Below are positions 38,265 to 45,020 of a stretch of 64,000 bases of DNA, piece after piece; within the stretch, counting starts at the first letter, position 1; the number at the start of each line of letters is the position of its first letter. This stretch comes from Salpingoeca rosetta (taxonomy: Eukaryota > Protista > Choanoflagellata): positions 1,596,468-1,660,467 of the forward strand of contig JAWQFM010000014.1 in assembly GCA_033442325.1 (NCBI GenBank), written 5' to 3'. The notes under the pieces were generated by a model, which had not been told where the DNA came from, did not search any database, and worked only from the letters and a program-made list of their open reading frames with translations. Both the position numbers and the translations under genes were made by a program.

Positions 38265-41200
38265 CTAAATCTCCGTCACGCCGCGGAGTGATGGTGCCAA
38301 CGCAAACACTTCCATGCGCACGACACCAAAGAACTTGGAGCCTGCAGGCGCGGGATAGTGGTGGTGGCGGCGGTGAGTTGGGGGGGGGGGTTGAAAAGAG
38401 GTGACGCACATGTGAGATGAAGTGACTCTTTTGAACAAGCAGGCACGAATGAGTCGACCACAAGATCAAATACAGACGCACACGCACGCACACACCTGCG
38501 AGCGCGGTGGGGACGTCTGAGCGTGTTCCAAACGCCTGCAGGAAGCTGTGTGACTGCTCGTTTCCGCTGCATGAGCTGGTGATAACGAGATCTGGCTGGC
38601 GCGTCAAGTCATACGAGCCGTACGCGACACACGCGCTCCTGTCATCGCGAGGGCGGCCGAAGTGATTGGGGAGGTGGTCAGTGGCGAAGGACGAAAGGGT
38701 GAGTATGCAAGCAGCCGATGGCACACACAGACACACAGACAGACAGACAGACAGACAGACACAAACACAGACACAGACACAGACACAGGCACACACACAC
38801 ACACACACACACACACAAGAGCCGAACGCACTCATCGAAACGCAGGCCTGCGTTGCCCTGTGCCTCGTATTTGGTCGGCGGATACCCTTGTGGATTGTCC
38901 AGACTGAACAGGAACGAGGGTCGCAGGCTGCTGTTTGGCTGGCGCGGGTGGCGGTGGTGCTCTGGCTGCTCACCCCATGCGTCCCACGTGAAGCCGCCAA
39001 TGGTGTACCCGGTCGTTGTCTGCGCGACCACAAACGTCGGGCGGCGCCCACGGCACGCTCGCAACACATCCCCACAGTCGTCCCCGTGCTCGCTCGTGCT
39101 GAAGATGCACTCCCACCGCGCACCAACGTCACCAAACCAGCTGTTGAGCAGATGCTGCTGCGCCGCGCTCACGACCTCGGATCCCGCGAACATGCGCGAG
39201 CCAGCCCGTGGGCGGAGTCTGACGTCATCGGGCGGGAGGACTGCCTCGCCACTCATGTGACGCGCGCGCGTTCGGGCCATCATCCCCGGCAGGATGCAGA
39301 GCGGCTCGACGGTGGAGTCGTAAAACGTTTCGGTGAGCAAGAGCGGGCGCAGGGCCGGCATGAGCCCCGCGAGTGCATCACGAACAGCATCGCGCTCCTT
39401 CATCGGCAGCAGCGCCTCGGCGGGGTCGTCCGTGCTGCTCTCGCCCATGGTCGCGCCAAACCCAAAGTTGTCGTCGTCGTCGTCGTCCAAGCCCGTCTCC
39501 GCCGCGTCAAAGGTGAGCGGGTCAAAGGCGCTGTTGGCGATAAAGCCCGCGTTGAAGCGGCCCCACATTACCATCCACCGGAACACCATGTCCTCCTCCA
39601 TGCACAGCTCATCGCTCGACAGCAGCCGCAGCATCGCCGCCTCCCCAAGATGAAGTGCCCCCGGCTTGCACAACACGAGTCCCGGGCGCTGCAGGAACAC
39701 GCGCTCGCACGCCCGCCGAAGGGCTTGCAAGCTGCCGCCACTGCCACCTTCATCTGCTTCTTCGTCGTCGTCCTCCTCCTGTGCAAGTTGGGTGGAAACC
39801 TCGAGGAAGTACGCACAGTTTTCGACGGAGATGCTTGCAAGCAGTTGCGACTGCACAAACGCTGTGACGCGTGCAAGCTCAAACGTTTGCGCGGCGTGCC
39901 ATGCCTGCAGGAGCAGCTCGGCGCTGGGCACAGGTGTGAGGTCGACATCGTGTTGGCGGCACTGCTGGTAGCACAGGTCCAGCGCAGCAACAGCGCCGTC
40001 CACCGTGAGCGTCTCAAAGTGCGCCTCTTCCTCGTCAACATCACCGCCAACTGCCGCTGTCTCCGCCAGCGCCTTCAACAGCGGGCTGTCGCACATGGCG
40101 AGCACGGCCGTGTGCACATACACGGGCGCCGCGTCGCCACCGACGGTGATGGTGAGATCGCTGGTGTCACGCTCGTTCACCCGTACGTCAAAGGCCGACG
40201 TGTCCAGCCGCATCTTGGGCGCGTCCGACGTCTCGCGCGTGTGCTCGTTCCCAAGCGCAACCACGTCTGTGTCTGTGCCCGCTGCTGCGCCCGTGAGCTG
40301 GTTGAGGTCTGTTGGCCGGATGGACGTGTCCACGGTGCTGCTGCCGTTGTCGCCCGCGAGCGTCAGGGCCCCTGCTGATCGCACAGGTGGTGGCGGGACG
40401 CGTGTTGGCGTGTGCTGCTGCTGCTGTTGCTGCTGGTGATGGTGCGTGTGTGGCGGCGGTGGGTGGACGGCTGCTGTTGGGGAGGTTGATCGCGACCGCA
40501 CCTTTGGTGAAGCGCCGCCTGAGTGGTGGTGGTGGTGGTGGTGGTGGTGGTGTTCCATCTCAGCGTCATCTTCCTCCTCCGCTTCTGCTTGGTGCCGCTG
40601 CTGTTTGAGTTTCGCCTCGAGATCCATTTGAAATTCGCGGCGGTTCACGGCAGGTGACGCAGAGGTCACATCTTGTTGTTGTTGTTGTTGTTGTTGTTGT
40701 TGTTGTTGTTGTTGTTGTTGTTGTTGTTGTTGTTGTTGTTGTTGTTGTTGTGCCGCGTGGCGTGCGACCGCAGCAGCGAGCGGCTCGTGTTCAACCACGG
40801 GCTGAACACGACGCGTGAGACAGAGTGTGGGGAAGGGGAGAAGAGAGGAGGGTGCAAGGTTGTGAGGGGTAGGTGAGATTGATAGCACTAGGAGGCGCGG
40901 CGAGGAAGCACAACACGGAACAGCGCAATCTTTTTAAAAGGCAAGCGCACAGCACTGCCTCACCGCAGCAAACGCTGACATTCTCAACCGGTCCTCTGTC
41001 TGCTCCTCTTCCGTCTGGTGATGTGAAGGAAGGTGTCAGTGGAAAGGTGAGGGCGAGGGTGAGAGGGGTGAAAGCAGTGACAGCAAGAACATGAATGACG
41101 TGGCGTTGAAGAGCCGGGCACTTCAAGTGTACAGAAGGAACAGGCTGCATTATCCCACACCAACCCCCAAAAAAGCGTGTACGCACGTGTGTTTCCCCGT

Positions 41201-44200: not shown

Positions 44201-45020
44201 CTCGTCCTTTTGCGCGTCGCCCATGTACCAGGACGCAGCGACAGCGTCTGCATCCGCTGGCAAGCGACCCTCGTACTTGGTGCTTGGGAGAGGCGGCAGC
44301 GGACCCTTTCCGCCTGTTGACAGCACGCGCATAACACGCCACGCGTGGAAGTACAATGTCAGCGCGCTCGCAGCAATATCATGTTGACAGATGCAACTCA
44401 TTCCGGCACAAGCAACGGCTGTTGTGGGTGGGGCGTGCGTGCGTGCGTGTGTGCGTGTGTGTGTGTGTGTGTGTGTGTGTGTGTGTGTGTGTGTGTGTGT
44501 GTGTGTGTGTGTGTGTGTGTGTGTGTGTGTGTGTGTGTGTGTGTGTGTGTGTGTGTGTGTGTGTGTGGACGTGTTGTCCTGGGAAGCGCACCTCGATACT
44601 TGAATGGCTTGGCGGAGGAGGGCATTTTGGCAAAGGAGACCGGGTTTGGGGTGAGGAAGTTGGAGGGCACGAGCCCCGTGCGGCCGCGACCGGTACACAC
44701 CATCCACCAGCCGTCGTTGAACGTCTACGCCAGAAGAGGAGCCGGGGTGTTGAATACATAGGGCGTCGGGCAAAGCGTAGTCGTAGTGAGCGAGACACTC
44801 AGTGAGAGCAAGAAGCATGTGCAGCCAATGGTAAAGCAAAACAAGCAGCAAACAACACACACACACACACACACACACAAACACACAAGCACACACAACA
44901 CACACACAATCGTGCACGCACCTCCAAGACCATGAGCTTGGCGTCTGCCTTGCACGTCAGCTCGTCGTCATCCTGTGCCACATACGCCGCAAGCGACACG
45001 TGCACAGGTTTGGCACTCAT
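38265..45020 (-). CDS. Multidomain SH3-SH2-(helical/EF-hand-like)-polyQ-BTB/BACK-TLDc protein
   Basis: SH3 (LAAYVAQDDDELT...DGWW...GLVPSNF), SH2 (WYMGD...GGFLVRI...YALAVK...LIHAL), BTB (SDLTITVGG...VHTAVLAMCDSPLLKAL...CAYFLEV...EEDMVFRW), TLDc (WECIFSTSEHG...PTFVV...IGGFTWDAW...SFLFSL...F GVVRMEVF). About 17 exons can be joined with GT-AG boundaries in consistent phase. Stop TAG at 38265-38267. Confidence 0.75.

Follow-up and report, generated by a model that had tools for sequence, protein, structure and literature searches.

A Salpingoeca rosetta gene joining SH3 and SH2 domains to a BTB-BACK-TLDc body, a candidate phosphotyrosine-directed CUL3 adaptor with a possible V-ATPase link

A single gene of the choanoflagellate Salpingoeca rosetta joins an SH3-SH2 head to a BTB-BACK-TLDc body, in the order SH3, proline-rich linker, SH2, basic disordered stretch, helical repeat region, polyglutamine/polyhistidine (polyQ/polyHis) linker of ~230 residues, BTB, 3-box/BACK, acidic D6-FGFG loop and TLDc. 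It lies on the minus strand at 38265-45020 of the window, that is, the whole 64,000-nucleotide stretch of DNA that was analysed (assembly GCA_033442325.1, contig JAWQFM010000014.1, positions 1,596,468 to 1,660,467 of the forward strand). We hold both this architecture and its expression as a single transcript with high confidence. The function we propose is more tentative: the whole chain could serve as a phosphotyrosine-directed adaptor of the CRL3 type (a cullin-RING ligase that uses CUL3), with a TLDc domain that would hold the V-ATPase (an ATPase of the vacuolar type). The main rival to this reading is a V-ATPase-regulating scaffold with no ligase activity.

Gene structure and transcription

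The gene model of 18 exons was read from the genomic sequence, and each exon was translated by script in its own phase. A script check of the 18 exons finds GT..AG at the ends of every intron, consistent phases throughout and zero in-frame stops. The coding sequence is 3633 nt in length and encodes 1211 residues, with a TAG stop at 38267-38265. There is a single copy of the gene in the S. rosetta genome, and its introns are rich in (GT/CA)n, a long (CA)n run lying at 44455-44567. The features of the gene are as follows.

38265-45020, minus strand: the gene, with 18 exons and 17 junctions.
44922-45020, minus strand: exon 1, with the ATG at 45020; N-terminal half of SH3 (Pfam match 44993-44922), followed by a GT donor.
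44592-44724, minus strand: exon 2; C-terminal half of SH3 (DGWW...GLVPSNFL) and start of the linker, with AG and GT sites and phase 0 to 1.
44201-44313, minus strand: exon 3; proline-rich PLPPLP (44302-44285) and the SH2 start WYMG (44230-44219).
43926-44033, minus strand: exon 4; SH2 core with a Pfam SH2 match and FLVR at 43985-43974; RNA contig piece 43925-44035.
43549-43679, minus strand: exon 5; C-terminal part of SH2 (...LSGLIHALATRDSKLPV); RNA contig piece 43545-43678 and a joint to exon 6.
42633-43366, minus strand: exons 6-9 (43366-43220, 43053-43011, 42856-42804, 42676-42633); basic, Ser/Ala-rich linker, probably disordered, with zero Pfam matches; the four flanking joints are in raw reads and contigs.
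41495-42341, minus strand: exons 10-13 (42341-42262, 42142-42047, 41861-41747, 41592-41495); helical region with about four repeats; RNA joints and loose ends.
40964-41321, minus strand: exons 14-15 (41321-41187, 41014-40964); H6RH4 at 41309-41277 in exon 14; joints 41014/41187 and 40801/40964, and a loose end at 41494 that corresponds to the start of exon 14.
38832-40801, minus strand: exon 16, a continuous open reading frame (ORF) of 1970 nt with linker, BTB, 3-box/BACK and the N-terminal half of TLDc.
40801 to about 40200, minus strand: disordered linker of exon 16, with polyQ (26) at 40750-40673 and polyHis (10) at 40552-40523.
About 40189-39830, minus strand: BTB, in exon 16.
About 39829-39233, minus strand: 3-box and BACK, in exon 16, holding the D6 and NFGFG loop at 39487-39455.
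39172-38832, minus strand: N-terminal half of TLDc, in exon 16.
38496-38638, minus strand: exon 17; continuation of TLDc (AYG...DLVI...); a contig joins 38831 to 38637, and 11 raw reads carry the exon 16 tail.
38265-38341, minus strand: exon 18 (coding 38341-38268, then TAG); end of TLDc (FFGVVRMEVFAL) and C-terminus ...GVTEI; joint 38340/38495 in all four RNA runs.

The polyQ, polyHis and H6RH4 tracts are thus all located, as the first-pass annotation of the sequence had claimed for the linkers. A (CAT/CAC)n tract at ~42990-42870 was considered as coding for polyHis/polySer and rejected; the RNA joints place it inside intron 7 (43010-42857).

RNA evidence over 38265-44264 was drawn from two stranded raw RNA-seq runs (X16 and X17) and two contig runs (X4 and X7); exon 1 lies outside this stretch. 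Fourteen of the 17 junctions, within the range from exon 3/exon 4 to exon 17/exon 18, are seen in reads or contigs, and the phases fit. Ten are listed directly, with GT..AG ends on the minus strand, and four (exon 3/exon 4, exon 10/exon 11, exon 13/exon 14 and exon 16/exon 17) are fixed by the consensus of loose ends together with contig pieces; a loose end at 44035 in the RNA contigs is the tail of exon 3, so exon 3 is joined to exon 4. The exon 4/exon 5 junction is outside the 14, with contig record numbering that is contiguous across both exons. Exon 1/exon 2 and exon 2/exon 3 rest on GT-AG sites, continuity of the SH3 profile and colinearity with the orthologue of Salpingoeca infusionum, to whose residues 1-39 exon 1 is 44% identical. 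The junctions seen include all that lie from the SH2 exons to the big BTB-BACK-TLDc exon, and the two sets of exons are therefore not separate genes. The junctions at 40800-41900, flagged beforehand as the weakest of the model, are each confirmed by RNA exactly at the phase-consistent positions.

The contigs extend this picture to both ends of the transcript. The 5' contig (1612 nt in X4 and 1589 nt in X7) carries exons 4-15 plus ~75 nt of exon 16, and its first 433 nt fit exons 1-3 (345 nt) plus ~88 nt of 5' untranslated region. The 3' contig (4918 nt) carries exon 16 from about 40549, followed by exons 17 and 18. First mates lie almost all on the plus strand, as expected of minus-strand RNA in a stranded library. 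Corrected for the intron content of the bins, the depth of the upstream exons relative to exon 16 ranges from ~0.5 (X16) to ~1 (X17), from which we conclude that most transcripts are full length.

It is very improbable that two adjacent genes, one encoding SH3-SH2 and the other BTB-TLDc, have been misread as one. Two observations count in favor of such a division and so against a single transcript. Both contigs end at a CAA/CAG/CAC repeat (40402-40760) that is bridged by no read or contig, and in one contig run the 3' contig has a depth of 81 against 17 for the 5' contig, a fivefold difference. The repeat was skipped in read mapping, with the rest of exon 16 covered by reads, and in the genome it is one uninterrupted open frame. 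Against the division, the joints are unbroken from exon 3 to 40801; the 5' contig enters, with its ~75 nt, the stop-free open frame that carries BTB-BACK-TLDc; and the raw runs, as well as the other contig run (272 versus 315), have similar depths for the two parts. Moreover, the S. infusionum orthologue (EP00049_P016574) is one complete transcript ORF of 1225 residues with the same domain order (SH3, SH2, repeat region, long linker, BTB-BACK and a full TLDc at 77 bits). Separate transcription of the two halves, the outcome against which the first-pass annotation had staked its reading, was not found.

Two minor features of the RNA data were recorded. At window position 38346, in the last intron and 4 nt before the acceptor, 8 of 8 reads of one run have G for A. 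The exon 17 tail (gcgctcgcag) resembles the intron end near 38346 (gcgcctgcag), and the change is most likely the overhang of spliced reads on the intron, not editing or polymorphism. Contigs of X4 and X7 also leave the locus at intronic positions 41068 and 38376 and run on for 255 nt absent from the window; these could be assembly chimeras or rare alternative forms.

The SH3-SH2 head

Pfam searches were run exon by exon, or on the big exon alone, and statements on full-length domains rest on the S. infusionum orthologue. The SH3 domain (PF00018/PF14604) is recognized from adjacent, colinear matches in the first two exons, whose halves were scored apart: exon 1 matches SH3_1 profile positions 3-26 (17.7 bits), and exon 2 matches SH3_1 positions 29-48 (18.0 bits) and SH3_9 positions 28-49 (25.1 bits). 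The hallmarks AAYVAQ, GWW and VPSNF are present, and the intact SH3 of S. infusionum scores 28.6 bits (cut-off 22.9). The SH2 domain (PF00017) is identified by its profile match together with WYMG in exon 3 and FLVR in exon 4, the latter intact as had been stated beforehand. Exon 4 alone matches SH2 profile positions 12-42 at 20.9 bits, where the cut-off of 21.0 applies to the whole domain. Exon 5 supplies the C-terminal helix and strand; it aligns by eye with the same part of SH2 in the orthologues, and the program alignment misplaced its first half. The SH2 region of S. infusionum scores 20.7 bits, and each of its 59 PDB matches (E up to 5) is an SH2 domain or a construct derived from one.

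The SH2 head may bind phosphotyrosine, and we think it unlikely that the head has lost this role. That alternative would make the protein an outcome of domain shuffling, with an SH2 that has ceased to read phosphotyrosine; its head would serve as a generic module for protein binding or autoinhibition, and the whole would work like the animal BTB-BACK-TLDc proteins. Several features weigh on that side and against phosphotyrosine reading: the SH2 scores are at or just below the Pfam cut-off, and the domain has unusual residues: alphaA2 has Lys instead of Arg, betaD4 has Asn instead of His and betaB7 has Pro, with R-I-P-[DE] after the arginine (our reading against Src numbering). The model of the N-terminal 430 residues of S. 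infusionum is also poor (predicted local distance difference test, pLDDT, 47), with the helical repeat region alone usable. On the other side, S. rosetta and S. infusionum both retain the arginine at betaB5 and the opening W-Y-x-G, and the arginine is also kept in Monosiga brevicollis and in an environmental contig (L011), whose sequences are without the W-Y-x-G start; overall identity is only ~30-40%. The best PDB matches of the S. infusionum SH2 are the functional SH2 domains of RasGAP, tensin and Grb2.

Downstream of the head, exons 10-13 encode ~130 residues in which G-[YF]-[LM]-[ST]-x3-[ML]-[QR]-x-L recurs about four times. The G-[YF]-[LM]-[ST] repeat is kept in S. rosetta, S. infusionum (residues 280-400), M. 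brevicollis and L011 (690-1050), and its tyrosines are conserved across lineages. In the model of the S. infusionum orthologue the region is helical (pLDDT 70-89); its best PDB structural match is insignificant (Z 5.4), and there are zero Pfam families and zero ESM Atlas feature matches for it. Conserved tyrosines so near an SH2 domain might be phosphorylation sites, a suggestion that we infer purely from their position and conservation.

The BTB-BACK-TLDc body

The body was analysed as the 486-residue non-repetitive part of exon 16, folded with a 45-row alignment. The resulting AlphaFold2 model (pLDDT 82.3, predicted template-modelling score 0.71) has a BTB followed by 3-box and BACK helical hairpins, that is, a BTB-BACK fold, at about residues 760-1080 of the 1211. 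The top ranks in Foldseek are KBTBD2-CUL3, KLHL11 BTB-BACK, SPOP, KLHL22, KLHL3 and vaccinia A55. In VIA-align the KLHL11 BTB-BACK gives Z 15.6 (242 of 267 residues aligned, root-mean-square deviation, rmsd, 4.2), KBTBD2 gives Z 14.4, and the BTBD6 BTB domain gives Z 12.7 (rmsd 2.2). The part described as BTB/BACK-like by the first-pass annotation is thus nearest in structure to the KLHL/KBTBD type of CUL3 adaptor, and a CUL3-like gene is present in the same genome, where there are four cullin loci.

C1, ~749-751 kb: CUL3-like cullin in small exons (CUL3 8e-10 versus CUL4 2e-8).
C11, ~144-146 kb: CUL1.
C2, ~2.315 Mb: CUL4, within a very long open frame.
C22, ~1.073-1.076 Mb: CUL1/CUL2-like.

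Small exons between them encode the CUL3-like cullin's N-terminal domain, and one open frame of the C1 locus has zero PDB matches. From the modelled fold, there is close to an even chance that the BTB-BACK part dimerizes and docks the N-terminus of a CUL3-like cullin.

The TLDc domain (PF07534) exceeds its Pfam cut-off (28.9 bits against 24.5) over profile positions 8-103 in exon 16, and the sole PDB sequence match of the exon 16 body is the TLDc protein mEAK-7, bearing out the earlier domain call. Exons 17 and 18 are colinear with the second half of TLDc in relatives and end in the E-V-F motif of the family. The hallmarks HG (G of HGDD), GGF, YG and MEVF are all present. Eaton et al. found that certain TLDc residues are needed for binding of Ncoa7 to the V-ATPase (PMC8608904). 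Equivalents are located here for two of the tested Ncoa7 glycines and for the Glu; the equivalent of Ser817 is Asp. The D6 tract and N-F-G-F-G lie in the loop between BACK and TLDc, and this loop is kept in choanoflagellate and environmental relatives (DEDD..FGF). In Ncoa7 and Tldc2, poly-E tracts tended to enhance V-ATPase binding (PMC8608904). By analogy with the studied proteins (PMC8608904, PMC9263379, PMC11094088), we infer that the TLDc domain here would bind the V1 sector. One result weighs against this: the isolated TLDc domains of Tbc1d24 and Tldc1 failed to pull down V-ATPase (PMC8608904), and a TLDc domain is therefore no guarantee of V-ATPase binding. A C-terminus of VTEI had been read as a class I PDZ-type end. 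The protein does end in TEI; as a PDZ-type end, however, it is not conserved in S. infusionum (...TCVI), with which alone it was compared, since the M. brevicollis model (A9UNI8) is truncated at the C-terminus of TLDc.

The evidence on the body also bears on the non-ligase scaffold, in which BTB-BACK only dimerizes, TLDc regulates V-ATPase assembly or localization like Oxr1, Rtc5 and mEAK-7, SH3-SH2 adds tyrosine-kinase control, and no cullin is involved. We regard this as somewhat unlikely, and three points speak for it and so against recruitment of CUL3. Each functionally studied TLDc protein acts on the V-ATPase directly and not via ubiquitin (PMC8608904, PMC9263379, PMC11066047, PMC11094088). 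The Pfam scores of BTB (15.9, cut-off 20.5) and BACK (17.9, cut-off 20.9) are both below threshold. The CUL3-contacting phi-x-E loop is not clearly kept across the family; a candidate, V-D-E (40039-40031), is common to S. rosetta and M. brevicollis, with no clear equivalent in S. infusionum or the relative P0004. Against the scaffold, CUL3-binding BTB-BACK proteins make up the overwhelming majority of the structural neighbours, and the matched region takes in 3-box and BACK helices that dimerization alone does not need; in addition, KCTD-type BTB_2 domains, some accompanied by pentapeptide repeats and some not, are likewise fused to TLDc in other, unrelated proteins. The ligase reading is favored for these two reasons, the 3-box and BACK helices being typical of CUL3 adaptors.

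Relatives and novelty

An exhaustive profile-free protein search recovered 211 proteins at E <= 0.001, headed by an environmental fragment (55% identity), the S. infusionum orthologue and M. brevicollis XP_001742463.1 (A9UNI8_MONBE). The M. brevicollis protein (1032 residues) jumps from the first half of SH3 to mid-SH2; its N-terminus looks mis-spliced, with a mis-predicted intron, and because the SH3 half is fused straight to mid-SH2, its head is not seen by Pfam at E <= 0.01. L011 (Logan SRR26909563; 3477 nt, GC-rich) carries, on one strand, the orthologous C-terminal part of SH2, the GYLT repeats and an ORF for BTB-BACK-TLDc; between these elements a retained intron or frameshift breaks the frame. 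Hartaetosiga gracilis is represented by a fragment. Word-index protein searches, for which the big exon and the S. infusionum orthologue served as queries, returned only the queries themselves, and are uninformative given the low-complexity words and ~30% identity.

Stand-alone BTB-BACK-TLDc proteins are present in Sycon, Tubulanus, Anopheles, Saccoglossus, Priapulus and Sarcoptes (sponge, nemertean, insect, hemichordate, priapulid and mite), and the nearest ESM Atlas entries by features are clusters of 50-120 BTB-BACK-TLDc proteins, mostly arthropod (score 0.78, a lead only). These invertebrate proteins (~400-530 residues; e.g. Sycon ciliatum XP_065192210.1, Anopheles bellator XP_058058893.1 and Priapulus XP_014661667.1) are uncharacterized and share the same three-domain body in the same order, with HMMER E-values of 1e-21 to 1e-12 and a template-modelling score of 0.56 over 340 residues between the whole-module model and an arthropod cluster. 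They are without the SH3-SH2 head, the GYLT repeats and the polyQ/polyHis linker, and their BTB is canonical (Pfam E 1e-13 to 1e-18), whereas that of the choanoflagellates is divergent. Since both BTB-BACK-TLDc and BTB_2-TLDc fusions occur, BTB and TLDc occur together in more than one form. Elsewhere TLDc is fused to a dynamin GTPase, a ubiquitin-like domain, Stig1 repeats or a LamG domain, and by its sequence contexts it is a promiscuous C-terminal module.

Judged by sequence comparison, the S. rosetta protein is a choanoflagellate variant of the known BTB-BACK-TLDc module and not a one-off. The SH3-SH2 head and repeat region may be a choanoflagellate addition, or alternatively may have been lost in animals. 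Choanoflagellates are known for unusual SH2 combinations, and this one is the less surprising for that. The SH3-SH2-BTB-BACK-TLDc architecture was undescribed in full-text literature searches, the subscription papers Manning 2008 and Pincus 2008 on the M. brevicollis phosphotyrosine toolkit being outside their scope, and was not found in Richter et al. 2018 or the DANSy preprint. The earlier statement that no such architecture is known therefore stands in that no paper describing it was found, and needs qualifying in that the architecture is shared by at least three choanoflagellates and one environmental contig and its body is that of a populous animal family. The orthologue sequences are already public (A9UNI8_MONBE with a mis-modelled head, and EukProt EP00049 P016574).

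Comparison with known systems and proposed function

Each part of the protein has counterparts in characterized systems. With the BTB-BACK-Kelch adaptors KLHL11, KBTBD2 and KLHL3 it shares the BTB/3-box/BACK fold and a C-terminal domain in the substrate-receptor position; it differs in that TLDc replaces the Kelch propeller, identity is ~16%, and the CUL3 contact residues are not demonstrably conserved. The conserved glycines and C-terminal E-V-[FW] of the TLDc regulators Oxr1, Ncoa7, mEAK-7/Tldc1, Tbc1d24 and yeast Rtc5 are also found here, and the acidic tract upstream of TLDc is like the poly-E of Ncoa7 and Tldc2 (PMC8608904). The N-terminal partners of these regulators differ (LysM/GRAM, TBC and others), and none has a BTB or SH2.

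The head has the order of the SLAP/SLA and Src-family cassette, an N-terminal SH3 and then SH2, but here no kinase domain or myristoylation signal is seen, and the SH3-SH2 linker of ~45 residues is proline-rich. There is no evidence of orthology to SLAP/SLA or to the Src-family cassette. SLAP passes phosphotyrosine targets to the ubiquitin ligase Cbl through its tail. The SOCS-box proteins (SH2 plus SOCS box, with CUL5) and Cbl (SH2-like TKB plus RING) have a like logic, in which a reader of phosphotyrosine is coupled to a module that recruits an E3; here the cullin is of another class (CUL3) and the adaptor of another fold (BTB), and the relationship is one of analogy, not membership. Pfam matches to a SOCS box or RING are absent from all exons and ORFs of the region (E up to 1-10) and from the full-length orthologue (E up to 0.01).

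In the CRL3-adaptor reading, BTB-BACK would act like the KLHL/KBTBD/BTBD modules. TLDc would occupy the substrate-binding position of these adaptors and hold the V1 sector, as yeast and mammalian TLDc proteins do, and the SH3-SH2 head would bring the assembly to tyrosine-phosphorylated or proline-rich partners. Tyrosine kinases would in this way control a CRL3-type ligase, or at the least a scaffold associated with the V-ATPase, that is analogous to SOCS-CUL5 and Cbl but built of different parts. An independently evolved link from phosphotyrosine to ubiquitin is thus a hypothesis that we consider possible, with the chances somewhat against it. A more specific version seems improbable, though not fanciful: a choanoflagellate-built ligase in which SH2 selects phosphotyrosine proteins (e.g. 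internalized receptor kinases), BTB-BACK recruits CUL3, and TLDc either tethers the complex to endosomes or food vacuoles that bear V-ATPase or turns the pump itself into the substrate. The repeat tyrosines would then be read by the protein's own SH2 for autoinhibition or oligomerization.

Significance

Choanoflagellates have very large repertoires of tyrosine kinases and SH2 proteins, about whose downstream steps little is known. The conserved, expressed protein described here provides a concrete hypothesis, namely that phosphotyrosine signals feed CUL3-type ubiquitination, V-ATPase regulation, or both; because S. rosetta can be transfected and edited, the hypothesis is testable in the organism itself. 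The finding also draws attention to the uncharacterized invertebrate BTB-BACK-TLDc family, which together with the BTB_2-TLDc fusions suggests a possible role of TLDc as the substrate-receptor domain in CRL3 ligases. If the more specific and improbable version of the proposed function is true, the protein would add a third solution, independent of SOCS-CUL5 and Cbl, and would tie tyrosine-kinase signalling directly to the acidification of organelles in a form that predates animals.

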